Source of the DNA: Klebsormidium nitens
Taxonomy: Eukaryota > Plantae > Klebsormidiophyceae
Length of the DNA stretch: 34,308 nucleotides
Direction: 5' to 3'
NCBI GenBank assembly: GCA_000708835.1
Contig: DF237727.1
Coordinates: 1-34,308, forward strand
In this document: positions 5,290-31,931 of the stretch, one piece after another
How the letters are laid out: each line of letters starts with the position of its first letter
Numbering within the stretch: position 1 is the stretch's first letter
The notes under the pieces: generated by a model
Told to the model about the DNA's origin: nothing
Databases searched by the model: none
What the model saw: only the letters and a program-made list of their open reading frames with translations
Position numbers and translations under genes: made by a program

Positions 5290-5610
5290 ATGGGGAGCTT
5301 AAAGATAACGATGGAGCCTCTCTCGGAGGGGAACTACCACTCCTGGTCGATCAAGATGAAGAGTTATCTGATCACCAAGAGTCTGTGGAAGGGAGTAACG
5401 GATCCTTCAGCAAACGCTGAGGAGTCAGAGCAGGCGTTGGCACTGATCACGTTGAACGTGGCAGATCATCTGCTCGGGAGCCTGTCAGAGCTTGCAAACG
5501 CTGGGAAAGCGTGGAAGCAGCTGGAGAGTACTTTCAAGAGCAAGAGCGTGGCTCGGAAGTTGCAGCTAAAGAGGGAGCTGCAGACACTCAAGATGAAGGG
5601 AGAGGAGAGT
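5290..5610 (+). pseudogene. gag: Copia gag N-terminal part, truncated; reads on in frame into a viral-type sequence (whole ORF 5290-5973)
   Basis: LSEGNYHSWSIKMKSYL...LW...A.KAWKQLESTF......RKLQLKRELQTLKM is the Copia gag (UBN2/Retrotran_gag_2-type) signature. No zinc knuckle, pol or 3' LTR follows. Confidence 0.85.
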
Positions 5611-5973
5611 GACACTAATCTCTTCCGGGACTCCTACGCCTTCCTCTCGTGCCCCGAGCTGAACACGAGCTTCCACGAGACCACCTACAATCGATCCCTC
5701 ACCAACGCCATTGCACCGGCGGTGTCCAACGCGTTCGCGAGGCTGGCGATGTTTGGGGAGTCTGGCGGAGTGACTTTCTACTCGACCAACACGGCGACCA
5801 TGGTCAGGAAGGTCTTCAAACCGCCCCTAGCCAAGCTGGATCAGATGGAGTTTATGTGGCTGCGCAAGGACGGAACGCCTGTAGATTTTCAGGGCTTGGA
5901 TAACTCTTTCATCCTGCGCTTCAATTGCCGAGGAAGGTCCCTCGGCATGCCGCAGCTCACGGCACGCACCTGA
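5611..5973 (+). pseudogene. C-terminal half of a DUF5901/penton-like giant-virus protein, 5'-truncated at the Copia junction
   Basis: FARLAM...KVFKPPLAKLDQMEFMWLRKDGTPVDFQGLDNSFILRF resembles the C-termini of 19037-19534 (PPLPKLDRLNVTF) and 28201-28902 (ISRLSVILLDDAGALYDTRGADHSLVFEF). Confidence 0.65.
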
Positions 5974-6025
5974 GCGAGGCGACACGGCTGCGACAATTTT
6001 CCAATACAACTGGTAGAGTCGCAAG

Positions 6026-7171
6026 ATGGGGAAGACCACCCTCAACGCAGAGAAGTTTCTGCTCCCCATATCGGGGGACGAGCTGAGCTTTAGGGAAGCC
6101 CCCTGGAACCAGAACCTGACTGGTGGAAACTGCTACTCGTTCAGTCTCAACACAGACAAGGCGTCGGCGACCGAGAAACCGCAGCCGGGAGACATCGCGG
6201 TCGTCTATTCGGACATGCACGAGCCCTACAAACTGCTCGAGCCCTTTGATCTGACCGACTGCACCACGTTGCAGAGGCGGGTCATGGCAGACGGTATCGC
6301 GATGAAACGCATCATGGACAGAAGCAATGACGGAGAGCTCTTCGATCACCTGAAGACCGTGATACGAATCGGCAAGATGAATGACAAGCCGCCGAGGGGC
6401 ACGTACAAGATAGCAGCGGTGATAGACAAGGGCAACGACTATCATTTCTTCAGGCAGGACGTGTTGGACATCTACAACCTCTATACGTGTCCGATCTACG
6501 TCTACAGGAACGGCAAGACCTTCTCGGCCCCCAAGAACCCTTACCAAGTCTTGCAGATCGATGCCTTCACGAGCGGCAACTCTATAATGGACATGTACGA
6601 CAGCAAGAGAAGGTACGACGAAGCGACGAAAGATGCCTTCAAGAAGTTGACACGCGACTTTGGCCCGGCCTTCGAGGGAGCTCCCGCTCATCTCAACAGG
6701 GCGATCACCAACGTCACCATACACGTGCGTCGCATGCCCAGATACGTCATAGAAGAAGGAAATCTCATCGTGGACCCATTCTGGCTCCTCGACACCCCCG
6801 ACGATGGCACGGGACTCAAGAAGAAAGGAGACGCGCTGTACGACTTCTTCGTGAGGACCGATCGGCAGTTGCACGCCCTGACGGTGCAGGCGGCCCTCCG
6901 CGATTGCGAGCGCATACTCCGCGACCGCACTCTGGCTCCTCAGAAGCACCAGCTGATAGGGCTCTGGAGTCAGAAGCTCGGCTTCGCGACTCCGGCCATC
7001 AACACGGACGGCTTCATGAAGCTCATCTTTGACCCGAGGCGAGCCATGAGGCAATTCGGAAACGGCTCTAGCGGCTTCCAGTACAAGGTGTTCTGCACCG
7101 CCTTCTACGTGGACAGGAACCACGGCATCACGAGCGTCCCCCAAGGTCTCGGAGAGTTCGGCCTCGCGTGA
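6026..7171 (+). CDS. Giant-virus papain-like (Cys-His) peptidase-fold protein, 381 aa
   Basis: LPISGDE...GNCYSFS...KPQPGD, YKIAAVID..NDYHFFRQD, WSQKLGFAT....D....IFDP..A.R.......Y..FC..F.V match my recollection of a conserved prasinovirus/chlorovirus family. About 170 aa are inserted between DYHF and WSQK. Confidence 0.7.
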   Translation: MGKTTLNAEKFLLPISGDELSFREAPWNQNLTGGNCYSFSLNTDKASATEKPQPGDIAVVYSDMHEPYKLLEPFDLTDCTTLQRRVMADGIAMKRIMDRSNDGELFDHLKTVIRIGKMNDKPPRGTYKIAAVIDKGNDYHFFRQDVLDIYNLYTCPIYVYRNGKTFSAPKNPYQVLQIDAFTSGNSIMDMYDSKRRYDEATKDAFKKLTRDFGPAFEGAPAHLNRAITNVTIHVRRMPRYVIEEGNLIVDPFWLLDTPDDGTGLKKKGDALYDFFVRTDRQLHALTVQAALRDCERILRDRTLAPQKHQLIGLWSQKLGFATPAINTDGFMKLIFDPRRAMRQFGNGSSGFQYKVFCTAFYVDRNHGITSVPQGLGEFGLA

Positions 7172-7206
7172 TTTTCGGACGGAGTGTGAAAAAAACTTCT
7201 GCGTTA

Positions 7207-7233
7207 CAGTCTGTTCAGAATAAAATGGCACAC
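7207..7233 (+). repeat. TIR (3'/omegaRNA end of the Fanzor element)
   Basis: CAGTCTGTTCAGAATAAAATGGCACAC preceded by TA. Confidence 0.9.
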
Positions 7234-7330
7234 TCGCCACAGTACTCAGCCGTATCTCGGGTTCTCACCGAGGTGCCTAGATGAACTCGTTTCTAGGCAG
7301 CTATGTCTTCGAACTATCTATCTGATAGCC
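7207..7330 (-). ncRNA. Predicted Fanzor1 omegaRNA scaffold (boundaries approximate)
   Basis: Lies between the ORF 3' end and the element end, the usual omegaRNA position. Hairpins TGCCTAGA/TCTAGGCA (7274-7299) and CTCGG/CCGAG (7256-7272). The motif TATGTCTTCGAACTAT is shared by both Fanzor copies. Confidence 0.55.
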
Positions 7331-8473
7331 CCAGACTCCTGCTCTCGTAAACTCCGCTGGCCTGTCCTGGCCTCTTGCTATGCGCATACAGATCCAAGCT
7401 ATGTTACGAGCTGCGTTGACGTCTCTATTCCACACCATGCGACAGAACGGGTTAGTACACGCTCGCACGTTGTGGCACGTCTTGTAGCTCGTCCTCCCTC
7501 GTCCGTCCTCGTCCTCTCGACCCCCTCCCTCGGTCACCGTCTGGATCCCATCCTCCGTCACATGCTGCCTCTTAAGCACGGCGAACTTGTCGACGTCCGA
7601 GTGGCATGTGCTGCACACCTAGCTCGTCCTGTACTCGTCTATCATGACGACCGTCGCCCCGTGATGGCTGCTGAGGCGCCTCTTCACCGACTCACACGGA
7701 CCACACTGCCTCTTGGTCCTACCCGCCCACACCTGTGCGGCCCCGAAAGCCACCACGGTCTTCTTCCCTGCCGTGATCCTCTTGCAAGCTCTGTCTACCT
7801 CGATCTGCCTCTTGATCGTCACTCTCCGCCTCAGCTTTCGGACCCTCCTCGCGGTGTGAAAGCGTACCAAACAGTACAGGTTCGCAGCGACGAAGGTCAC
7901 CCTCTTCCCAAACTCCTCCAGGCTCACGGTGGTCCCGGGAGGAGCATTCTCGTTGAAGGCTGCCACATCCAGGTCTCTGGACATCCAGGTGTGCATGAGG
8001 AACGTCCGTTTCTTGAATCCCGCTCGGTGGTAGAAGTCCCTGGTCCCCAGGTCGATGATCTCTTCCTGGCGCTCGATTCCGTCCCAGTCGCCGGTCACGG
8101 CGATGCCGGTGAGGAAGTCGGGATGCTTTCCTGGGTCCAATCCCACCACGCGCTGCTTGGGGTGGATATGCACCGCTCGGTCCTCCGGAGGGGGCGTCCT
8201 CTTCTCCACCAAGAAGTACACGCTTGCGGACACTCCGTCCGTCGTGATCCGGTCTGCGAAGGTCTTCCCACCGCTCTCCAGTCGTCCGATTGAGGGAAAA
8301 GCATCGTGGAGCTCTCCCGGAGCCTTTCTCTTGCCGCTCTTGGGCTGCAGCTCGGGCCATATGGTGGGAGTCACCGCGATGAAAGGTGCCGAGAAGGAGG
8401 CGTGAGGCACCAGCGAGAAAGACCGCAGCTCGCGGTCCGAGAACTCCTCGCTGATGATCCTCATCCAGCGCAT
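7301..8473 (-). pseudogene. Second, diverged Fanzor1 copy: 3' half only, with a premature stop
   Basis: Same RuvC/zinc-finger sequence as 8517-10415 with many substitutions. CAG to TAG stop at 7619-7621 (EYRTS*). The 5' part is cut by the gap at 8474. Confidence 0.85.
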
Positions 8474-8516
8474 NNNNNNNNNNNNNNNNNNNNTATGTCT
8501 TCGAACTATGTATCTG

Positions 8517-10415
8517 TCATCCCCAGACTCCTGCTCTCGTGAACTCTGCCGGCCTGCGCTCGCCTCTCGCTATGCTCATACAGATCCAAGCTATGTTGCG
8601 AGCTGCGTTGACGTCTCTATTCCACACTATGCGACACAGCGGGTTCGTACACGCTCGCACGTTGTGGCACGTCTTGTAGCTCGTCCTCCCTCGTCCGTCC
8701 TCGTCCTCTCGACCCCCTCCCTCGGTCACCGTCTGGATCCCATCCTCCGTCACCCGCTGCCTCTTGAGCACGGCGAACTTGCCTACGTCCGAGTGGCACG
8801 TGCTGCACACCTGGCTCGTCCTGAACTCATCTATCATGACCACCGTCGCCTTGTGGTGGCTGCTGAGTCGCCTCTTCACCGACTCGCATGGACCACACTG
8901 CCTCTTGGTCCTGCCCGCACCCACCTGTGCTGCACCAAGAGCCACCACGGTCTTTTTCCCTGCCGTGATTTTCTTGCAGGCTCTGTCCACCTCGATCTGC
9001 TTCTTGATCGTCACTCGCCTTCTAAGCTTTCGGACCCTCCTCGCGGTGTGAAAGCGTACCAGGACGTACAAGTTCGCACAGATGAAGGACACCCTCTTCC
9101 CGAAGTCCTCCAGGCTCAAGGTGTTCCCCGAAGGAGCATTCTCGTTGAAGGCTGCCACATCCAGGTCTCTGGACATCCAGGTGTGCATGAGGAACGTCCG
9201 ATTCTTGAATCCCGCTCGGTGGTAGAAGTCCCTGGTCCCCAGGCTGATGATCTCTTCCTGGCGCTCGATTCCGTCCCAATCGCCGGTCACGGCGATGCCG
9301 GTGAGGAAGTCGGGATGCTTTCCTGGGTCCAATCCCACCACGCGCTGCTTGGGGTGTATATGCACCGCTCGGTCCTCCGGAGGGGGCGTCCTCTTCTCCA
9401 CCAAGAAGTACATGCTTGCGGACACTCCGTCCGTGGTGATCCGATCCGCGAAGGTCTTCCCACCGCTCTCCAGCCGTCCGATGGACGGAAAAGCATCGCG
9501 GAGCTCTCCCGGAGCCTTTCTCTTGCCGCTCTTGGGCTGCAGCTCGAGCCATGTGGTAGGAGTGATCGCGATGAAAGGTGCAGAGAAGGAGGCATGAGGC
9601 ACGAGGGAGAATGACCGCAGCTCTCGGTCCGAGAACTCCTCGCTGATGATCCTCATCCAGGGCACGTAGAGGTGAGGTCTGCTCTGGGGCGCCGCAGGCA
9701 GCGGCCCGACCTCAGGCCTGATGGAGTCGACCAGACCCTGCAGGCACTCGATGGCAGCCTCTGAGATCCTCCCACGAATACGGGGGTACTCCGGCAGCAG
9801 CTCTCGGACGCTCTCGTTCGGGCGCCACAACGTGGCGGTCGTCAGCAGCCGGGTGCACGACTCCACATCCTCGTCCGCGTCCCCGAAGAATGGCACATCT
9901 GGAGAAGCCTCTAGCAGGAGTAGCTTCACGAAGGCCCTGTGTCGTGACTGGAAGAGGACAGAGACGTGATTCTTGATGTTACAGAGGAGTTGGTTGCGGA
10001 GCTCCAGGAGGATGTTGGCGATGCGAGGGAGACAGCTGTTGTTCGGACGGTTGGGGCAGAGGGGGAGGTAGTGGTGGACGAATGTTTCGTGGAGGTCTGG
10101 GTCTGCTTGCGGCTTCTTAGAGTACGTACACTGCATCGCGCGTCCGACCAGGTTCTGGTCGATGACGGGTATGGGCCGTCCCTCATCCAGGAGGCGGATG
10201 AAGTGGAGGTTGAGAAAGAGGCATGTCTCGACTCGGATGCGGGTCACCTCCGGAATGATCTCCTCGATCCGATCTCTTATGCCGCGTTCCTGGCAGAGGA
10301 ACTTCCATCCCGTCTGGACCACGGATGTCTCCTTGTCCTTCCTCAGCGTTCTCCGGAGGGTAATATCTGGGCGCTTCCTCTTTGCCTCCTCGGAGTCATC
10401 TGCCTCTTCGTCCAT
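8517..10415 (-). CDS. Fanzor1 (eukaryotic TnpB-like RNA-guided nuclease), 632 aa, apparently intact
   Basis: RuvC-I VVGLDPG; RuvC-II with Gly at the canonical Glu position (VVALGAA) and the alternative Glu in IDEFRTS; CxxC...CxxxxC zinc finger; RuvC-III WNRDVNAARNI; long N-terminal helical region; KRKRP NLS-like motif. Confidence 0.9.
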   Translation of the reverse strand: MDEEADDSEEAKRKRPDITLRRTLRKDKETSVVQTGWKFLCQERGIRDRIEEIIPEVTRIRVETCLFLNLHFIRLLDEGRPIPVIDQNLVGRAMQCTYSKKPQADPDLHETFVHHYLPLCPNRPNNSCLPRIANILLELRNQLLCNIKNHVSVLFQSRHRAFVKLLLLEASPDVPFFGDADEDVESCTRLLTTATLWRPNESVRELLPEYPRIRGRISEAAIECLQGLVDSIRPEVGPLPAAPQSRPHLYVPWMRIISEEFSDRELRSFSLVPHASFSAPFIAITPTTWLELQPKSGKRKAPGELRDAFPSIGRLESGGKTFADRITTDGVSASMYFLVEKRTPPPEDRAVHIHPKQRVVGLDPGKHPDFLTGIAVTGDWDGIERQEEIISLGTRDFYHRAGFKNRTFLMHTWMSRDLDVAAFNENAPSGNTLSLEDFGKRVSFICANLYVLVRFHTARRVRKLRRRVTIKKQIEVDRACKKITAGKKTVVALGAAQVGAGRTKRQCGPCESVKRRLSSHHKATVVMIDEFRTSQVCSTCHSDVGKFAVLKRQRVTEDGIQTVTEGGGREDEDGRGRTSYKTCHNVRACTNPLCRIVWNRDVNAARNIAWICMSIARGERRPAEFTRAGVWG

Positions 10416-10634
10416 CTGGGAATGTCGTGAGAAATAACGTTTTCTGGTATATATACTCCGAGCGAGATCTCTCTCGGACGGTCGTCCGAATGGGAGATGC
10501 TTCTGGGCTGTCTCTCTTCGGACGCCTGTCGTTTCGACGTGGCGATCTAGAAGCTTCTGGAGCTGGGGTTTCGGACGCTGGCGTCCGAGACGCTTCCATG
10601 ATACTCTTGAGAATCAGTTTTTCCAGAAAACCAG

Positions 10635-10661
10635 GTGTGCCACTTTATTCTGGACAGACTG
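10635..10661 (-). repeat. TIR (5' end of the Fanzor element)
   Basis: GTGTGCCACTTTATTCTGGACAGACTG followed by TA; reverse complement of 7207-7233 with 2 mismatches. Confidence 0.9.
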
Positions 10662-10673
10662 TAGGCGTAGCAT

Positions 10674-11927
10674 ATGGAAAACGCTTCGACGGAATGGTCG
10701 AAAGTCTTGCAAGCAGCTAACAGCGGAGACGGTTTCGCAGTAGATCACTTGGTGGAAGGTAAGCTGAAGGGAATACTCCCTGCGTTCGTAGAGGAGGCTT
10801 TCGAAGAACAGTGTTTTCTCTTCTGGAGTAGGGACGGGGAGTACACCGAGGAGATCAGGGCGGCGTGCACCGCACATGACCCTCTGGAACCAGCGGTACA
10901 GAGAGACGTCGACGTCGTGGTCCTTGATGTGCGCTTCATAGACCCCTCCTCCGCTCACAGATTCTTGGGGATAGGGATGGAAGGAGAGTTTGCGGTGAGC
11001 GTTACTTATCACGCGAAGAGCGCAAAGTCCATACGAGTCCTCATATGGGAGGAGGACAGCAGGGAGGACGGCGAGCTGTACGTCAGGGTACGGGGTTGGG
11101 AGGCGAGCGGTTTCAAGCTCGTCAGAGAGTGGACGCCCAGGACCAGAGTCTCGTCGGCCCGAACGAGGATCTCGTTCGGCAAGCCGGAGAGCGAGAGGCC
11201 GAGCATCCTCTTCAAGGGGAGGTCCGTATGTTACACGATCAAGACCTCGGAGCAGATCCCGCAGAACAAGTCTGCCACCGGCGTCAAGAGGGGAAACGTG
11301 AACCTCACGTTAAGGGTCGGCCTGAGAGAGCCCGTCGTGGGCTCAGAAGACGACCTGGTCGTCATGCGGGTGCAAGCGGAATGTATAGTCGTACCAGAGG
11401 TCGGAAAGGGGGTCAAGAGCGTACGCGTTCGTTCCGTTTGTAAGATCGGGGGCTCGCAAGGATCATGCAGTCTCGTGGACGGCAACTCCGGTCACCAAGA
11501 AGAAGGTGCTACTGACTATTGCAATTGGAAGTACGGGGGAGACGTCTTCGACTGCGGCCGTACTCATCTGATAGACAGCGCGCGCCAGACGCATTCGCTG
11601 CTCAGACCGGACACCCTATGGATGCTATCCAGCAAGGGGCTTCAGGCCGTGACGGTCGCGACGGAGCACGAGATGGGCGAGAGCGAGGGCAAGGTCGGAA
11701 TAAAGGCCAGGCTCTCGCGCCTCTTCTCCGACGAGAGCGGCAACAAGCTGGTGACCTGTAGCAGACACCTCAGGATCTCGGTGGTGAGCGACATGGCTTT
11801 CTTGAACGCTTTGGAAAAAGCATGCATGATGTGTCGGATACGGAAGCAGAACGGCAGCTGGAACAAGACTCACGAGCAGAACGTCCGCGCGAAGAGAGAG
11901 AAGCTGATAGCTTCGGCTAGGTTTTAA
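10674..11927 (+). CDS. Hypothetical viral protein, 417 aa
   Basis: Long ATG-initiated ORF, beta-strand-rich centre, no motif confidently recognised. Confidence 0.7.
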   Translation: MENASTEWSKVLQAANSGDGFAVDHLVEGKLKGILPAFVEEAFEEQCFLFWSRDGEYTEEIRAACTAHDPLEPAVQRDVDVVVLDVRFIDPSSAHRFLGIGMEGEFAVSVTYHAKSAKSIRVLIWEEDSREDGELYVRVRGWEASGFKLVREWTPRTRVSSARTRISFGKPESERPSILFKGRSVCYTIKTSEQIPQNKSATGVKRGNVNLTLRVGLREPVVGSEDDLVVMRVQAECIVVPEVGKGVKSVRVRSVCKIGGSQGSCSLVDGNSGHQEEGATDYCNWKYGGDVFDCGRTHLIDSARQTHSLLRPDTLWMLSSKGLQAVTVATEHEMGESEGKVGIKARLSRLFSDESGNKLVTCSRHLRISVVSDMAFLNALEKACMMCRIRKQNGSWNKTHEQNVRAKREKLIASARF

Positions 11928-12852
11928 GGACCGGTGACGAACGGCTCTTCTGCAACCAAGGGTGTTCCAAGGCCTGCGACGCAGTGAGGCGCCCCTTGAC
12001 ATCTCTCGTGAGCAGATTCTGCAGAAAGTTCTTGGCGTCGTTAGTTATGGCCACCCCGTCGTAGTTTGGACTCTTCGACAGGACCGCCTCGAATACCTCC
12101 GACTCGGTCCTGCCGTAGAACGGTCGTGATCCGACCAGCAGGATGTAAGTCAAGACCCCGATGCTCCACTCGTCAGCTTTCAGATCGTACGCCTTCTTCA
12201 GTACCTCTGGAGCTACGAAGTAAGGACTGCCGACGATGTCGTCCAACACTTCTCGCTCTCCACATAATCCAGAGAGGCCGAAATCGATCGCTTTCAGGAG
12301 CGAGTCCTTTTCTTCGCTGGCGAACAAGAAGTTCTCGGGTTTGATATCCCTGTGGATCACTCCCATGCGATGCATGTATGCGACGGAGCTCAATATCTGC
12401 CAGACGATCGGAATTGCGCTCTCCTCCGAGCAACGTCCTCCGACGTCGAGTATGCGGTCGGCCAAGTCACCACCATGACATAGTTCCATGACTATGTACA
12501 CGTTCATGACATCCTCATAAGCCTCTATAAAGTCGACCACGTTATCATGGCGTTGCAACATGCGTAAGATGGTCACCTCGCGGACTACATCGTCCACTTC
12601 TACCTGACTTGTCATCCTGCGTTTCGGAATGACTTTCACCGCCACTCGCTTTCCTCCAGCAATCTTTTTGGCGATAGCGACGTGCGTCCTTCCGAAACTT
12701 CCACTCCCAATCTCGAGTCCAAGCTCATAATCGTCGTAGAATCTCCTCTTGAAAGAAAACACCTTGTTGTCTATAGTTGGCCTGTGTGGGCTAGGCTGTT
12801 CGACAGGCCCCCGTTCCGTGGATCTATCCGGTGTATTCAGACATTGTCCCAT
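11917..12852 (-). CDS. CDPK-related (CRK-like) Ser/Thr kinase, kinase domain only, intronless
   Basis: GSGSFG, VAVK, HRDIKPENFLF, LKAIDFGLS, DIVGSPYFVAPEVL, GSRPFYGRTESE, ALEHPW. The GGRxSEE and SRPFxxRTES motifs resemble plant CRKs. MGQC acylation motif at the N-terminus. Ends right after the kinase domain. Confidence 0.9.
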   Translation of the reverse strand: MGQCLNTPDRSTERGPVEQPSPHRPTIDNKVFSFKRRFYDDYELGLEIGSGSFGRTHVAIAKKIAGGKRVAVKVIPKRRMTSQVEVDDVVREVTILRMLQRHDNVVDFIEAYEDVMNVYIVMELCHGGDLADRILDVGGRCSEESAIPIVWQILSSVAYMHRMGVIHRDIKPENFLFASEEKDSLLKAIDFGLSGLCGEREVLDDIVGSPYFVAPEVLKKAYDLKADEWSIGVLTYILLVGSRPFYGRTESEVFEAVLSKSPNYDGVAITNDAKNFLQNLLTRDVKGRLTASQALEHPWLQKSRSSPVLKT

Positions 12853-12880
12853 CTCTCTGACATAAAGAACAATATTTTGT

Positions 12881-13839
12881 TCAGTGGAATTGCATGACGA
12901 ATCTCACGTTCTGCATGAGGGCAGCCTTGTGTTGAACTACCGTCCTCTTGCCCTCTCCCCCGTCCTTTGCTTTTTTCTTCACGTCCGAATCGGGCCATCT
13001 CTCCGTCTCCTCGTTCTTGACTCTCGTGGATTCGATCATGTCCTTCTCGATGGCTTGTTTGCTGAATTTCGCATACTCCAAGACTCCGTAATCTATCGCA
13101 AACTTGAAAAAGTTCAGCTGGCAGACGGTGGTGACCAGGCTGTGGATCACGCTGTCCTTTGGGTATTCGTGACGCTTGGCCTCCTCCGGGAAGATCAGCT
13201 TGATCTCCATCCCTTCTTCGCCTCCGATGGTCGTGGTCGGTGCTTTCGGGTTGTTGCGGACGTCGATGATGGGAAAAACGATGCGTTCGCGTCTGTTGAA
13301 CGGGTCGAACTGTCGCTTCGAATATGCCCTCAGCTGGTCTTTGTAGGCGAGAGAAAGGTTCACCGGTCTGCCATCGTGAATGTAGGAGACACCCTTCTTC
13401 TTGGCGTAGTTAGTGACTGCACACGAAGATATCACGCACACCGTTTTACAAAGTGCTGGTTTTCTGACCTCAAATAGGCGGGAGCGCTCGGTTATCTCAT
13501 ATCCCAGCGCTCTCAATCTCTCTATACAGTCTGGATTCAGAGACTCTCTTTTCACTACGGTGAAGCTGTAACAGCCACCTTTCGTAACCTCGTCGAACTG
13601 CCGTACGACCTGGTGGGCATCCATGATCCTGCTAGACCGGTCGTTCCCCGCGTCCCTAAGTAGACTGCTGATCTTATCCGAGAGCAAGAGGAAAAAACAC
13701 ACTCACTCAACCAATCGATGGTCCGGAGGCTCGGGTACCCGGACTTTTGTTGGAGTACATCCAGTAGTGTAGAGCAGTGTGTCGGGTCGTTGTAGTAGAT
13801 CCGCAGCTTCTCCAGCAACAGGTGCTGTTTGTCCGACAT
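12881..13839 (-). CDS. Conserved giant-virus protein split by one intron (exons 13839-13707 and 13416-12881; 222 aa spliced)
   Basis: SLRTIDWL in one frame and TNYAKK...YKDQLRAYSKRQFDPFNRRERI...TTVCQLNFFKFAI...IEKDM in another. These are parts of one family I recognise as conserved in large DNA viruses. Splicing joins them as IDWLITNYAKK. Confidence 0.8.
13417..13706 (-). other. Spliceosomal GT-AG intron, 290 nt, phase 1
   Basis: Donor A|GTGAGT at 13706, acceptor TCTTCGTGTGCAG| ending at 13417. Removal restores the frame and the conserved motif. Confidence 0.75.
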
Positions 13840-14005
13840 GATTTCCGTAGGATGCTGACTCTAGAGAAGTTTTTGAGGGTGCTAGCTGTCATATTGGCAG
13901 ATTGCCCTATATGAACACCACACTCCCGGAGTTGCGTCCGAGCGCGTCTTAGCCCGCGATAAATTTCTCTGTTAAAGTTATATGATAGCAGTCCGAACCT
14001 GACAG

Positions 14006-14896
14006 ATGACTCACTCTAAGCGCACACATGCAGGGGCTACCGTGGATGCGAAGACCTTCGCTACCGGGAAGGACTCCACCTCAGCGGATGTCGTGGTCGA
14101 TGACACCTCGTTCCCACAACTCCCCGTCTCCGAGGAGGTTCGTGGCAGCCCTAAAAAGCATGCCAAGAAGGATGAGAAGCACGCCGCCTCTCCCCGGACT
14201 CCCAAGAGAAAGGACGACACCACGATCCCGCACAAGCATCATAAGAAGGATGACGATTCGAAGCAGGAGACCGTCGTCGTCCCAGAGACCAACGAGGAGG
14301 AAGCGGTGGTGCAGGACACAGAGAAGGACGCTGTCACCCGACGGGCTCGACGGGAGGAAGCGACTGCGGAGGAGACCACGGAGGACGTGACCGCGGAAGA
14401 CCTGGTCGCTGAGGAGGCCCGGAAGGACGAGACGACTGACGAAAAGGGCGAGCTGCTGGAGGTGCCTTCCACGTACACCGCCATGACCGTGGACCGCGCC
14501 GCCATCGAGAACAGCGGAGATCCGGCGGAGCCCGGTGCCATCGCCAATCAGGTGGACGGCGTCCCCAACGTGCAAGCCGTGGCTTACGACCAGCAAGACG
14601 GCATCACAAAGGCCACCAACGTCACCCTGCCGCCCGGTTCTCTGCCGGACATCGTCCCGGGTGTGCCCAACGTGCCCCTCACCTCTCTGCTTGGGACCAA
14701 CACCACCCAGGATCTGGGGGCCATCCCCCTGCCGGATATCATCCCCGGCGTGCCCAACGTTCCCGCTATTGTGGTGACCAATCCGGACGCGGAGCCCGAT
14801 AAGCAGGATACTCGAGGAACCAACGTGGCTGCTACCGCGCAGATCCAGCCCAGCGACGTAGAACTCAAACAGATGCCTCGTTTCGCACAGCAGTAA
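14006..14896 (+). CDS. Low-complexity charged / Pro-rich hypothetical protein with LPDI(V/I)PGVPNVP repeats
   Basis: 296-aa ATG ORF; basic then acidic tracts; two 12-aa repeats near the C-terminus. Confidence 0.7.
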   Translation: MTHSKRTHAGATVDAKTFATGKDSTSADVVVDDTSFPQLPVSEEVRGSPKKHAKKDEKHAASPRTPKRKDDTTIPHKHHKKDDDSKQETVVVPETNEEEAVVQDTEKDAVTRRARREEATAEETTEDVTAEDLVAEEARKDETTDEKGELLEVPSTYTAMTVDRAAIENSGDPAEPGAIANQVDGVPNVQAVAYDQQDGITKATNVTLPPGSLPDIVPGVPNVPLTSLLGTNTTQDLGAIPLPDIIPGVPNVPAIVVTNPDAEPDKQDTRGTNVAATAQIQPSDVELKQMPRFAQQ

Positions 14897-14973
14897 GACA
14901 TCCCGCTCCGACATCCCTAATCCGATAATCCCGCTCGATCGCGGCTACCTCTGGTAGCTGCTTTGGAACGCCT

Positions 14974-15351
14974 TCATCTCTCGTACAGTTTCTCGAGCAT
15001 CCGTCTGTAATGGTCGGGGTCGCGTCGCGGCGGCTTGACCACGTCCTGGCCCGTCGGAAAGATGATCTTCAAGGGCAGGTTGAATGAATGGCAATGCGAT
15101 TCGAGTTTGCCCAGTTGGATCTCCTGGAGCTGCGAGTCCGGATCGAATTGAAAAAGGAACTCATCTGCGTACGCCTTGTCCGAGAACACCATGGCCATAG
15201 GTGGTTCCATGGAAAAATGAGGTGACAACGGTGCCCGTAAGATGTTTTCGTTTCGTCTGAGGACGTAGACATTGTCGGTCCTCTTCAGCAGCGGGAGGCG
15301 AGCGCAAGCCCTCACGGGAGGGTGGGCGAAGGCGAGTGCATGCGATCCCAT
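14974..15351 (-). CDS. Hypothetical viral protein, 125 aa
   Basis: ATG ORF filling the space between neighbouring genes. Confidence 0.55.
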   Translation of the reverse strand: MGSHALAFAHPPVRACARLPLLKRTDNVYVLRRNENILRAPLSPHFSMEPPMAMVFSDKAYADEFLFQFDPDSQLQEIQLGKLESHCHSFNLPLKIIFPTGQDVVKPPRRDPDHYRRMLEKLYER

Positions 15352-15426
15352 AATATACTATAGGCAAGAAAAGAGGTACGATTCGCGATTCTTTTTCCTC
15401 TGAACTCATCGTAGCGAGGGGCCGAG

Positions 15427-16191
15427 ATGAACGGTCCGCAAGACATAGGCGGCCTGGTGGACCGTCTGAGACGGTACGTCACCAAGTATGCAGAGACGGA
15501 TAAAGTGTTTATCAGTGGCCTCAAGGACACTCTGAATGACCTCGACGGTACCACCATTCGCTGGAGGGATGCGTTCAGGGATTGTCAAGCGGTGTGTCGC
15601 AAGCTATCGGAATTGCTAGAGAGTTGGGAAGTGCCCTTGGACATGCTGTCCATAGGTCTAGATCAATTTCGTAACGGCCAAGAGAACTCGGCTATGCGAG
15701 TCTTTAACAGGATTCCCGTCTTCATGTCCGGCCTCTCCAATCTGGAGGAGGATCTCTCGGAACTATCCAGGATCGAGGTGAATGCGAACGCGCTGAAAAA
15801 GGCGGTGAACGGACTCGTCAAGAAGTTGGTGATCAGGATGGTGAAACTACAAGCGCGCTCGGAGAGCCACGCGTGCTTCTGTTGCAAGAGGGTTCCTCAG
15901 AAGACGATAGATGAGATATTAGATGTACTCGTCGACGTGAGCGCTTGCTACAGCTGGCAGTGTAGGAACATCGACAGGTGCATCTCCCGGCTCTGTATAG
16001 CGTACGAGTGCACTACTTCCGTCGCCGACGTCTTTAGAAACTGCGGGTTCAAGGAGGGACGGAGCCTGGATCACATAAGCGAGAACATCATACGGAGCGA
16101 AATCATCACGCAACTCCGGACGACCAGGCTAGCGGTACATCGGGTCATGCAGACCATGACGGACGTGTGCGAGAAACTCGTGGAGAAGTGA
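15427..16191 (+). CDS. Hypothetical helical protein, 254 aa
   Basis: ATG ORF in tandem with 16226. Confidence 0.7.
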   Translation: MNGPQDIGGLVDRLRRYVTKYAETDKVFISGLKDTLNDLDGTTIRWRDAFRDCQAVCRKLSELLESWEVPLDMLSIGLDQFRNGQENSAMRVFNRIPVFMSGLSNLEEDLSELSRIEVNANALKKAVNGLVKKLVIRMVKLQARSESHACFCCKRVPQKTIDEILDVLVDVSACYSWQCRNIDRCISRLCIAYECTTSVADVFRNCGFKEGRSLDHISENIIRSEIITQLRTTRLAVHRVMQTMTDVCEKLVEK

Positions 16192-16225
16192 GGCAAAATT
16201 CTTTATGAGTTAGTAGGTATGCGAG

Positions 16226-16798
16226 ATGGACTTTCAGAGGACCCCGGTCGAGCGATTCTGCCCCGTCGTCCCTCTCTACAAGGTCGACTCGTTCCCCGTG
16301 GGGGTGGCGACGCAGAGCCCGCTCGTGACGAACGCTCAGCAATACACGAGGCTTCCTCTCGACAAGGAGAAACTCTTCGTGTACAGAGAACCCACTTTTC
16401 AAGAAGAGAACGTGTTTCAATCGCTAAAGCAGCGACCCATGGAGTTGCATTATGAGTTCTTTGGCAACACGAACGTGGTCCGGTTGCATGCAGAACTGAC
16501 GAAGCGTGTAAGAGAACAGACGGGTTACACCATAGACCGGCAATCAGACGAGACGTTGAGCATCATCATGCGTTACATATTCGAAGAGAACGCTCTGCAT
16601 CAGCCGCACGATATACCAGGCCAGGTAGCCGCTCTGAACGAGTTGGTCCTCGCCACCATAGTGCCCATGGCCGTCACTCGCATCAAGATGCATCTCGCAT
16701 ACCTGAAAGACATCACCACTCTTCCGGAACCATTAGCCCGAGCGGTCAACACCAGCACCATCGGCACGGCCGGTCTGGAGATGAAGCGATACATCTGA
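16226..16798 (+). CDS. Minor capsid protein P8-like (DUF5761-type) giant-virus protein
   Basis: FFGNTNV......V...TGYTIDRQS...L.IIMR.IF.....Q..ALN..VL......YLKDI..LPEPL..AVNTS..G pattern, recalled as the P8 central-region family of algal giant viruses. Confidence 0.7.
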   Translation: MDFQRTPVERFCPVVPLYKVDSFPVGVATQSPLVTNAQQYTRLPLDKEKLFVYREPTFQEENVFQSLKQRPMELHYEFFGNTNVVRLHAELTKRVREQTGYTIDRQSDETLSIIMRYIFEENALHQPHDIPGQVAALNELVLATIVPMAVTRIKMHLAYLKDITTLPEPLARAVNTSTIGTAGLEMKRYI

Positions 16799-21254: not shown

Positions 21255-21411
21255 AGTCCCACGGCATCGAGTACTCAGCAGGGTTGGTTGGAGATTGTAA
21301 TGCTCAGTGGAGGCGGATTGTACTTGAGGTATGAGGGACATATGACGCTTTGATTGGCAAGTACCAGGATAGTCGCATGGCCCAGACATGTTCTTGCCAG
21401 CAGGGTACGTA

Positions 21412-22281
21412 CAGTCTGTTCAGANNNNNNNNNNNNNNNNNNNNNNNNNNNNNNNNNNNNNNNNNNNNNNNNNNNNNNNNNNNNNNNNNNNNNNNNNNNN
21501 NNNNNNNNNNNNNNNNNNNNNNNNNNNNNNNNNNNNNNNNNNNNNNNNNNNNNNNNNNNNNNNNNNNNNNNNNNNNNNNNNNNNNNNNNNNNNNNNNNNN
21601 NNNNNNNNNNNNNNNNNNNNNNNNNNNNNNNNNNNNNNNNNNNNNNNNNNNNNNNNNNNNNNNNNNNNNNNNNNNNNNNNNNNNNNNNNNNNNNNNNNNN
21701 NNNNNNNNNNNNNNNNNNNNNNNNNNNNNNNNNNNNNNNNNNNNNNNNNNNNNNNNNNNNNNNNNNNNNNNNNNNNNNNNNNNNNNNNNNNNNNNNNNNN
21801 NNNNNNNNNNNNNNNNNNNNNNNNNNNNNNNNNNNNNNNNNNNNNNNNNNNNNNNNNNNNNNNNNNNNNNNNNNNNNNNNNNNNNNNNNNNNNNNNNNNN
21901 NNNNNNNNNNNNNNNNNNNNNNNNNNNNNNNNNNNNNNNNNNNNNNNNNNNNNNNNNNNNNNNNNNNNNNNNNNNNNNNNNNNNNNNNNNNNNNNNNNNN
22001 NNNNNNNNNNNNNNNNNNNNNNNNNNNNNNNNNNNNNNNNNNNNNNNNNNNNNNNNNNNNNNNNNNNNNNNNNNNNNNNNNNNNNNNNNNNNNNNNNNNN
22101 NNNCGGATACTTGCTTTCGGACGCATTGTTTCGGATACTTGCTTTCGGATGCTTCCGCTGTGATATGCCTTTCGGATGCTTCCGCTGTGATATGCCTTTC
22201 GGATGCTCCGATGCTCCCAAGCTCTCGGACGAGACCTTCGGACGCCGATTTCTCGCGTGCCATTTTATTCTGGACAAAGTG
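21412..22281 (-). mobile_element. Second insertion of the same TIR/TA element family; interior lies in the assembly gap
   Basis: TA|CAGTCTGTTCAGA at 21410-21424 is identical to the start of the 7207 TIR up to the gap. GCGTGCCATTTTATTCTGGACAAAGTG|TA at 22255-22283 resembles the 10635 TIR. Confidence 0.8.
22103..22207 (+). repeat. Subterminal tandem repeats of element 2
   Basis: 27-bp unit TTCGGATGCTTCCGCTGTGATATGCCT at 22144-22170 and 22171-22197 plus a partial third copy; CGGATACTTGCTTT also occurs twice. Confidence 0.85.
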
Positions 22282-22448
22282 TAATATTCTGCTGCATAGA
22301 AAGGGGACAGAGAGTGATGCGAAACATGTATCCTGGCCATTGTTGAAAGTCTGTATCAGTCATCTTTTGCTGATTACGCTGCATTGCATTGTGCTCGACG
22401 GGGGTGTAAGGCTTGAAAATAATAATCTTGCTATATAGTACCCTTGGC

Positions 22449-30185: not shown

Positions 30186-31931
30186 TTACTTCCTTCGTAT
30201 CGCACGAAGTAGTATGTTCCGAGCACCATTGCAATCCCTGTCTATGACTGCGAAGCAGCTTCCGCACTTGAAGGTCCTCGCACCCTCTAGGTTTTGCTTT
30301 ACTTCCCCGCACCTGCCACAGGTCTTGCTCGTGTAATGCTCGGAAACGATCAGGACTCTCACTCCCCTGCCAGCAGCCTTGGCTATCAGCCGCTGTTTGA
30401 ACTTGTAGTGCGACAGGAACGACATCTGCCTGACACTCTTGCTCCCGATCCGCCGTTGGAATCTTCGGACCATCTCGCTGGTCTCGAACGTCGGCAACAG
30501 AATGATCTTCGCTTTTCGTGTGAGGAAGTCCGCGACCTTGTAGTGCATCTCGTCACGCAGATGAGCTATCTTTCTTCGTGTCTTGATGATTCTCAATCTC
30601 ACTGCTCTTTGTTTTTTCCGATGGTCCTTCGGGATGCGCTTCTCGAAAGCGAGTAGTCTGTCCAAGGTGATAGCCAACGAGAACAGGCGTTGTGCACACC
30701 CATCGCCCAATTTGTATGCCTCGCTGGGGCTGTAGGCGGTCAGGAATGTTCTGACTCCCGGGTCCAGGGCTATCACTGCCTCTCTCGTCTCGTTGATGAG
30801 AGATTTGGTGTTTCCCTTCACTTTAGCTGGATGCGTTTTTGAGTAGGGCAAGAGGAGATAATACTTGGCACCATCGAATTGCAGCTGACAGTCCTTGGTG
30901 ATCTCGCCGATGGCACCCAACGTCTCGAACTCCCAAGGGCAATAATCTCCGTAGATGATCAGGGTGCGATTGCCCCTGCGCTTGACAGCAGTCTTTGCAA
31001 TCCCCAAGCACCACCCCTTCGAGTCCTCTTTTTTCTTCGTCTTGAAGGAAAATCGGAACCCGGTGATGTTCCCACGTTCTCGATTGCTGAAGCAGGATTT
31101 AGCATTCTTGGCCGCTTCGAAAACCGCAGCGGCCCTCACGTCCTTGGGTGTCTTCAAGAGGTGTGGCTTGTCTCCATTCACTTCAACTGGGGTGATCAAG
31201 TCCCGGAGGTACATCTTGTTGAAGCTCGCTGTCTCGTTCATGAGGAACACTGCCTTGTTGTAGCTGTATCGAGCCGCGTGCCTCCAGTCGTTCAGCATCC
31301 TCTTCTGATACTTCTTTGGGAGGATCCGAACTTTCCGCATCCTGATCAACTCCTCTGCTTCTTCGTGCTCGCTTTCTTCGTCCTTTGGTACCGTCTGTTC
31401 CTCCTCCGTAACGTCTTCTCCCGTTCCATCGACAACCGAACACCTGAACGACCGCGAGCACGTCCTCTGCCAGCTCTGCCTCTGGAGACTTATCGTCTTG
31501 TTGGAGAACCACGAGGCGGACACCGTGTCTTTCGAAGAACCACGAGAGCAGATCGAATCCGAAACGACACAGTCTGTCTTTTGAGGCAACCACAACCTCT
31601 CGTACAAGTCCCTTCTCGCTCTGTTCCAGAAGGGATAGAAGTCCCTTCCTCTTGAAATTGAGGCCCGATCCGACGTCGCTGATAACTGAGTGTCCGGGGT
31701 ACTGGTCACGCATATATGACTCTTGACGTCGAAGATCGTTCTTCTGTTTCTGGCTGGACACTCTGGTATAGATGTAGGAGGCGCGCTCGCTGGAGGGATC
31801 GAGGCTCTTGAGGTCGTAGATACGCTTGCCTCCAGGGCTACGCTCGACCTTGATCTTCCCGGCAGCTTCCCATCTGATGAGAGTCCTAGTGCACACACCG
31901 AAGTGGTCGGCTGCTTCGGACAACCTGACAT
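30186..31931 (-). CDS. tnpB: Fanzor2 / IS607-type TnpB RNA-guided nuclease (581 aa from 31931, or 384 aa from the Met at 31340)
   Basis: RuvC-I VIALDPGVRTF; RuvC-II with Pro at the canonical Glu position (IILLPTF) and the alternative Glu in VSEHYTSKTC; CxxC/CxxC zinc finger; IDRDCNGARNI. Confidence 0.92.
   Translation of the reverse strand: MSGCPKQPTTSVCALGLSSDGKLPGRSRSSVALEASVSTTSRASIPPASAPPTSIPECPARNRRTIFDVKSHICVTSTPDTQLSATSDRASISRGRDFYPFWNRARRDLYERLWLPQKTDCVVSDSICSRGSSKDTVSASWFSNKTISLQRQSWQRTCSRSFRCSVVDGTGEDVTEEEQTVPKDEESEHEEAEELIRMRKVRILPKKYQKRMLNDWRHAARYSYNKAVFLMNETASFNKMYLRDLITPVEVNGDKPHLLKTPKDVRAAAVFEAAKNAKSCFSNRERGNITGFRFSFKTKKKEDSKGWCLGIAKTAVKRRGNRTLIIYGDYCPWEFETLGAIGEITKDCQLQFDGAKYYLLLPYSKTHPAKVKGNTKSLINETREAVIALDPGVRTFLTAYSPSEAYKLGDGCAQRLFSLAITLDRLLAFEKRIPKDHRKKQRAVRLRIIKTRRKIAHLRDEMHYKVADFLTRKAKIILLPTFETSEMVRRFQRRIGSKSVRQMSFLSHYKFKQRLIAKAAGRGVRVLIVSEHYTSKTCGRCGEVKQNLEGARTFKCGSCFAVIDRDCNGARNILLRAIRRK

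Follow-up and report, generated by a model that had tools for sequence, protein, structure and literature searches.

The TnpB proteins of bacterial IS200/IS605 elements take their guide RNA from the right end of the element, recognize a target-adjacent motif (TAM) that equals its left-end flank, and have been proposed to act by cutting the unoccupied site. Moreover, TnpB elements move as single strands together with a TnpA partner and have neither terminal inverted repeats nor a TA duplication. In this study, a complete scaffold of Klebsormidium nitens (DF237727.1, 34308 bases, hereafter the window, with runs of N at 8474-8493 and 21425-22103) was analysed, and the interval 7205-10663 was found to carry an intact gene for a Fanzor1 protein between TA-flanked terminal inverted repeats of 27 nt. 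This protein shares the RuvC/zinc-finger core of bacterial TnpB and differs from most TnpBs, which have their glutamate at the canonical position.

Fanzor1 genes in Tc1/mariner-type elements, which the initial annotation of this locus gave as known, were described by Bao and Jurka in 2013 (PMC3627910), who reported Fanzor1-only elements with mariner repeats and TA duplications as well as TA-flanked Fanzor1 elements in Ectocarpus virus DNA and integrated copies. The Fanzor1-only mariner-type PUl-4 elements and the ESv-1 family of Ectocarpus siliculosus virus 1 resemble the K. nitens element in having Fanzor1 as the sole gene, terminal inverted repeats and TA flanks, and some of the Bao-Jurka elements likewise reside in a large algal DNA virus or in integrated copies of it (PMC3627910). 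They differ from it in their hosts and in their repeat sequences. Furthermore, PUl-4 has a known mariner partner with identical repeats (PMC3627910), whereas none was found for the K. nitens element. Three Fanzor1 proteins of solved structure, namely SpuFz1 of a chytrid fungus, PpFz1 of a mucoralean fungus and GtFz1 of a cryptophyte alga (8GKH, 9CF0 and 9CER), are similar to the protein studied here in full-length profile match, fold, Asp/Glu/Asp ligands and rearranged glutamate, although the identity in structural alignments is only 14-17%. SpuFz1 uses a CATA TAM and has its own 30-nt repeats (PMC10432273).

A Fanzor1 of K. nitens itself, KnFNuc, was reported by Jiang et al. in 2023 (Sci Adv, PMC10530073). 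KnFNuc is present in five copies per genome and has no introns; the protein was purified with RNA, and sequencing of its guide RNA placed the source in the 3' noncoding region, adjacent to the right end. A TTA TAM was found, the cuts were mapped as focused nicks on each of the two strands, and human cells were edited at rates of up to 2%. The locus studied here agrees in species, in Fanzor1 type and in its intron-free gene, and the five copies of KnFNuc compare with five annotated proteins of the present family (GAQ91395.1, GAQ92588.1, GAQ89740.1, GAQ90636.1 and GAQ90634.1), the ORFs of which are uninterrupted. Moreover, the TTA TAM agrees with a bias at the upstream flanks of the present copies, a small sample in which TA is preceded by T at 7 of the 9 upstream ends, compared with only 1 of the 8 downstream ends, the pattern expected if the TTA TAM lies in the left-end flank. 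The difference is one of setting, as the text of the paper presents KnFNuc as a Fanzor1 representative 'from a plant', with no viral setting given in the passages compared.

Comparing these attributes, and not the sequences themselves, we consider it very probable that the present family is the published KnFNuc family; K. nitens may also hold a second Fanzor1 family. A Fanzor1 from K. nitens was already tested in 2023, so that the nuclease is not a new one. The initial annotation had taken the omegaRNA and the TAM to be uncharacterised and the protein to be a candidate new programmable nuclease. Neither statement is supported in view of the KnFNuc report, in which the RNA was sequenced and the TTA TAM found, and in which the K. 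nitens Fanzor1 cleaved DNA and edited human cells (PMC10530073). The observation is therefore real and its family assignment sound, and it is the claim of novelty that fails; the locus is ordinary and already known. Its value as a new tool is small, since the purified protein-RNA complex, the TAM and an editing use are covered by that report.

An intact Fanzor1 gene between TA-flanked repeats

The ORF of 632 aa lies on the minus strand (10415 to 8517) and begins with an acidic stretch followed by the basic motif KRKRP at residues 12-16, as had been noted initially. Its Pfam match to the Cas12f1-like TNB domain was marginal (26.6 bits against a cut-off of 26.3). A full scan of 1.84 billion representative proteins yielded 1091 relatives at E <= 0.001, and a family profile and residue conservation were derived from an 83-protein alignment. 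This profile matched SpuFz1 over the full length with an E value of 3.9e-64, PpFz1 with 2.7e-51 and GtFz1 with 7.7e-45, whereas the mimivirus Fanzor2 was matched at 2e-10 only. The AlphaFold2 model built from a 13-sequence alignment had a pLDDT of 42 and was discarded; the 83-sequence alignment was used instead and gave a pLDDT of 90.6 and a pTM of 0.87. Foldseek ranked the SpuFz1 structures first (E ~1e-21, TM 0.69-0.73), followed by PpFz and GtFz, while the TM was 0.25 for the mimivirus Fanzor2 and ~0.24 for Cas12f, and TnpB was a far weaker structural match.

The predicted active site was consistent with this assignment. D363 is invariant in the 83-protein alignment and G494, E530 and D601 are conserved in at least 90% of it, and in the profile alignment D363, E530 and D601 fall on D383, E541 and D606 of SpuFz1, which are the magnesium ligands of that enzyme (PMC10432273). 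G494 occupies the canonical RuvC-II glutamate position of TnpB, which places the protein in the rearranged-glutamate type; this arrangement, with Gly or Pro at the canonical position, has been published for all Fanzors. The zinc-finger cysteines include C537, C540 and C589. In addition, the motif defined by Bao and Jurka (PMC3627910), D...[TS][TS]-x-x-C4 zinc finger...RD, is present with T533, S534, C537, C540, C589, R600 and D601 nearly invariant, and the conserved G500 and E536 of that study appear to be the same two positions as G494 and E530. By profile match, predicted fold and aligned active-site residues, the ORF at 8517-10415 is an intact Fanzor1, and the three RuvC acidic residues and the rearranged glutamate read from the DNA by the initial annotation were confirmed. 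The four full-size copies of K. nitens have ORFs of 632-646 aa, and the copy on scaffold DF238013.1 is broken, with a longest ORF of 539 aa.

The features of the locus are as follows:

7185-7204, minus strand: flank from which the natural guide would come, should the RNA run on past the repeat as it does in other Fanzors
7205-7206, no strand: TA outside the gene-downstream (right-end, RE) repeat; TA stands at all repeat ends
7207-7233, minus strand: 27-nt terminal inverted repeat downstream of the gene, of the RE type (T at position 9 of the repeat), from the repeat comparison
7207-7480, minus strand: candidate guide-RNA (omegaRNA/fRNA) scaffold, comprising the last part of the ORF, the untranslated stretch after it and the repeat itself, from conservation and predicted hairpins
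7302-8473, minus strand: copy A, a partial second copy of the 3' 1172 bp of the gene that ends at the gap, 92% identical to 8494-9665
8474-8493, no strand: assembly gap of 20 N outside the intact ORF, at which both 1172-bp repeat arms end
8517-10415, minus strand: intact Fanzor1 gene (copy B), 632 aa, from the open ORF, profile, predicted fold and aligned residues
10416-10634, minus strand: 5' untranslated or subterminal region, in which a TATA-like box precedes the ATG by ~45 nt and the motif CGTCCGAA occurs three times
10635-10661, minus strand: 27-nt terminal inverted repeat upstream of the gene, of the left-end (LE) type (C at position 9 of the repeat), from the repeat comparison
10662-10663, no strand: TA beyond the gene-upstream repeat; 3 nt further out the sequence is again syntenic with L006, a related virus contig
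21410-22283, minus strand: second element of the same repeat family, with TA and 13 nt of an RE-type repeat at the left, a 679-N gap, and an LE-type repeat and TA at the right

The inverted repeat arms at 7205-7233 and 10635-10663, counted with the outer TA, are 93% complementary, and the 27-nt pattern has three matches in the window against none by chance (100 shuffles). The CAGT start of the repeat is typical of Tc1-type elements. The initial annotation of TA-flanked 27-nt inverted repeats around an element that encodes no transposase was upheld, as TA lies outside both arms and no transposase gene was present in the window.

The same repeats, again flanked by TA, bound five more K. nitens copies, of which two lie on DF237614.1 (L001), one on DF238013.1 (L002), one on DF237505.1 (L007), and one is the second element of the window. 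They also bound metagenomic relatives on two giant-virus-like contigs of 127 kb (L004, 69% protein identity) and 43 kb (L005, 59-60%). The initial annotation had staked its reading on the sharing of the repeat with other copies, and the repeat was found in all of these places. TA stood beside 17 of the 17 repeat ends seen, the flanking sequence was different at each locus, and the copy in the window was 88-92% identical in DNA to its sister copies. The upstream and downstream repeats of the K. nitens copies consistently differ at repeat position 9 (C versus T), the RE variant of 7207-7233 recurs at the downstream ends of the L001, L002 and L007 copies, and the orientation of the second window element follows from these end variants. 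Uninterrupted sister elements measure 2276 bp (L001 5749-8024) and 2273 bp (L007 7567-9839), which sets the canonical element at ~2.27 kb and not at 3.46 kb; a third, of 2447 bp (L001 34-2480), carries additional tandem repeats. The locus is, quite likely, one of a small family of non-autonomous DNA elements of ~2.27 kb that have 27-nt inverted repeats, TA flanks and a single Fanzor1 gene.

Some variation was observed at the ends. The second window element, which with its interior gap could be a full copy or a short derivative, has an upstream subterminal region with 14- and 27-nt tandem repeats, unlike that of the first element, and this region is homologous to L002 187-591. On L002, two upstream-type repeats stand 405 bp apart (187-618), each preceded by TTA, and the subterminal region of the first resembles that of the second window element; this doubled upstream end may reflect one insertion within or beside another, or else a join made during assembly. 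A further metagenomic relative (L003 7924-8120, 72% protein identity) keeps the first two RNA hairpins described below and lacks the downstream repeat, so that it may be a truncated or differently ended element. An exact-pattern scan of the viral contig collection with the repeat gave no match, and protein-pattern scans of the viral and metagenome contig collections gave no confirmed relative; these collections evidently do not include the samples that hold the relatives.

The duplicated half-gene at the assembly gap

The intact ORF lies wholly to the right of the 20-base gap and does not cross it, with its stop codon 23 nt away. The sequences 7302-8473 and 8494-9665 form a direct repeat of 1172 bp that is 92.2-92.3% identical without indels, and both of its arms end exactly at the gap, the edges of which are discontinuous: the left edge is the middle of a partial gene copy and the right edge lies just past the end of the full gene. 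Because both copies of this repeat stop at the gap, the 3459-bp interval is not a single clean element. The initial annotation had treated it as one; its TA-flanked repeats do bound a Fanzor1 gene, and the duplicated half-gene inside had been overlooked.

Copy A covers the 3' three-fifths of the gene (residues ~250-632 of the protein); a single in-frame stop interrupts it, and it is free of frameshifts. There are 91 differences between copies A and B (22, 16 and 52 by codon position) with a dN/dS of 0.20 over 382 codons, and a divergence of 8% at this ratio indicates that they diverged as working genes. Two reads of one sequence were ruled out as the source of A and B by the same divergence and dN/dS. 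The identity of copy A to all other fetched copies was at most 91%, and neither A nor B exceeded 92.3% with any other fetched copy. The public gene model of the locus, GAQ91395.1 (KFL_007780030, 864 aa), runs from copy B over the gap into copy A, and the translation of copy A is 99% identical to the final 277 residues of this model. This model is an annotation chimera spliced over a gap and is unfit for use. The model GAQ90634.1 of L001 (1040 aa) is also chimeric and fuses a Fanzor element to the adjoining protein kinase.

Either two copies are present at the locus, or one contig end was built from the reads of another copy. The latter explanation, in which a single 2.27-kb element is present and two contig ends, one of them from another copy, were joined with a minimal gap, has in our judgement an even chance of being correct. 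It accounts for both arms of the 1172-bp repeat ending exactly at the gap, and the interval minus one arm and the gap comes to ~2267 bp, near the 2273-2276 bp of the clean copies. Furthermore, synteny with L006, described below, indicates that the two flanks are true neighbours. The stray end might have come, for example, from the interior of the second element, which lies 13 kb away and is itself an assembly gap. Against the artefact stand the 8% difference between A and B with its signature of selection, and the fact that both are real, distinct gene copies, each at no more than 92.3% identity to the other fetched copies, among which no source for the stray one was identified.

The presence of two copies, by a partial tandem duplication or as adjacent elements, comes close to an even chance; the gap would then conceal the missing upstream half of copy A as well as copy B's downstream end. 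Each of the two copies has the other as its nearest relative, and adjacent or nested ends occur elsewhere, as in the two upstream-type repeats of L002 and in the two elements within 6 kb on L001. However, this explanation gives no natural reason for the repeat boundaries to coincide with the gap edges, and the estimated gap size is 20 bases only.

Giant-virus surroundings of the copies

The genes that neighbour the element in the window encode a P8 minor capsid domain, an EsV-1-7 cysteine-repeat protein, DUF5901, DUF7197, a dCMP deaminase and protein kinases. Synteny with L006, a related virus contig of 55.9 kb (Logan, SRR16630550) that lacks the element, extends over window 5617-16794 and shows the genes left and right of the interval to be true neighbours. 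The initial placement of the element inside viral DNA was supported by the P8, EsV-1-7, DUF5901 and DUF7197 genes and by this synteny. In L006 4339-5993, which corresponds to window 7165-10666, LRAT-like and EF-hand genes stand in the place of the element. Homology with L006 restarts 3 nt past the right end of the element, while window 7165-7204, the 40 bp left of it, has no match in L006; to judge from this alignment, a deletion or a gain of genes accompanied the difference between the window and L006. The TA beside the repeats is consistent with a target-site duplication.

The other copies have similar surroundings. Homologues of the L001 and L002 flanks occur on L004, a metagenomic virus contig, and the contigs of the metagenomic relatives carry Pox_A22, PCNA and ribonucleotide reductase genes. 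Viral neighbours were found at three of the four K. nitens scaffolds that bear copies, the exception being L007, the surroundings of which are not judgeable. All copies with judgeable surroundings thus lie in endogenous giant-virus (Nucleocytoviricota) DNA, and giant-virus insertions in Klebsormidium, K. nitens included, have been published. The proper home of the family seems to be a giant-virus lineage and not the alga itself, a point that bears on how Fanzors spread between eukaryotes.

The ORF at 5290-5973 (plus strand) is chimeric. Its residues 11-107 match a copia-type gag in Pfam, and its residues 110-227 share 96% identity with the C-terminal end of the DUF5901-like L006 gene; as the viral synteny begins at ~5617, a retroelement or host junction cuts the viral gene there. 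The window also holds a second, unrelated TnpB-like ORF of 581 aa at 30186-31931 (minus strand), with a TNB domain at 69 bits and a match to HTH_OrfB_IS605. No convincing terminal repeats were found around it. Among proteins of solved structure, the best relative is the mimivirus Fanzor2 L79 (9B0L, E 3e-24), and by this match it appears to be a Fanzor2, so that one viral stretch would carry both Fanzor types.

Candidate guide RNA and proposed mobilisation

Conservation is unusually high over the end of the ORF, the 3' untranslated sequence and the downstream repeat, and 95 noncoding nt of this region are 90% identical to L004, compared with ~71% over the whole element. Three common hairpins lie within 7207-7325 and were predicted in seven of the eight sequences folded. 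In the third hairpin, the inner half of the downstream repeat pairs with the sequence just preceding the repeat. In L005, the first hairpin is replaced, at the same place, by a stem of other sequence. An Rfam scan gave no matching family and a tRNA scan gave no tRNA, and an exact-pattern scan of the viral and metagenome contig collections with the conserved RNA core gave no match, the samples of the relatives evidently not being included.

In other Fanzors, including SpuFz1 and KnFNuc, the protein forms a complex with a structured RNA whose sequence comes from the 3' end of the Fanzor gene and from the downstream repeat. This RNA continues into the flank, which serves as the guide, and the complex cuts double-stranded DNA that carries the required motif (TTA for KnFNuc) beside the guide match. 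If the element of K. nitens works in the same way, its natural guide would match its own downstream flank (7185-7204, minus strand, at the window locus) and its TAM would be the upstream flank base plus TA. With the guide taken from the downstream flank and the TAM from the upstream flank, the target would be a copy of the insertion site that has no element in it, for which co-replicating virus genomes are the most plausible location. Repair from the occupied genome would then retain or spread the element, as has been shown for bacterial TnpB. New TA sites would be reached only with a transposase that is supplied from elsewhere and recognizes the repeats; the conservation of the upstream repeat and the unrelated insertion sites point to such a transposase acting in trans, a partner that has not yet been found.

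Several observations weigh against this interpretation. A transposase gene is absent in the window and within 6 kb of the other copies (~10 copies), and the scans of the contig collections gave nothing, the K. nitens genome not having been searched by DNA. No empty site was found, since L006 carries two other genes at the spot and so offers no clean unoccupied site. The upstream flank at the window locus is CTA and not TTA, and the intact ORF's own 3' end is unassembled. The structural evidence for the RNA is weak, with one compensatory pair in the alignment and fold z-scores of +0.4 to -2.7, statistics that are explained by the closeness of the copies to one another. The identity with KnFNuc was inferred from organism, type, copy number, lack of introns and TTA bias. 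Finally, viral-origin genes of K. nitens have been reported to be enriched for methylation, so that the copy may be silent in the alga.

The last point leads to the possibility that the element is a silent relic, which came with a virus that integrated, was methylated and is decaying, the gene being inactive in the alga. We regard this as possible but somewhat doubtful. The left edge of the viral stretch is broken by the copia-type gag sequence, copy A and the L002 copy are broken, and the published methylation enrichment fits as well. However, four ORFs are intact, the catalytic residues are conserved and the dN/dS is low, and activity was reported for a K. nitens Fanzor1 expressed outside the alga (PMC10530073). 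Moreover, silence in the host is uninformative on function in the virus.

It is improbable that no transposase is needed and that RNA-guided cutting of unoccupied sites with copying-in suffices for persistence in virus populations, the repeats serving the RNA. In favour, no transposase was seen near ~10 copies, and a predicted RNA hairpin has the inner half of the downstream repeat as one of its arms. Against it, the upstream repeat, which lies outside the RNA, is conserved to relatives of 58-69% protein identity and the copies are at unrelated sites, both of which point to a transposase that recognizes both ends, and Fanzor1-only elements share repeats with confirmed mariner elements (Bao and Jurka, PMC3627910).

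Genes of 58-69% identity in environmental giant-virus contigs are bounded by the same 3' RNA region and repeats, the neighbours are viral at three of the four K. nitens scaffolds and no transposase was seen. On these grounds, the published 'plant' Fanzor1 might be a passenger of a giant-virus lineage that may be kept in virus populations mainly by RNA-guided cutting of unoccupied sites in co-replicating genomes and not by transposition, although we hold this to be unlikely.

The window holds 13 occurrences of the motif CGTCCGAA where 1.7 would be expected, and the motif clusters in the upstream subterminal regions of the elements (window 10483-10577 and 22116-22244, L001 60-400 and L005 5400-5950). 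In some copies, tandem repeats of 59-60 bp take its place in the upstream subterminal region. Both CGTCCGAA and these subterminal tandem repeats could be transposase-binding or promoter elements.

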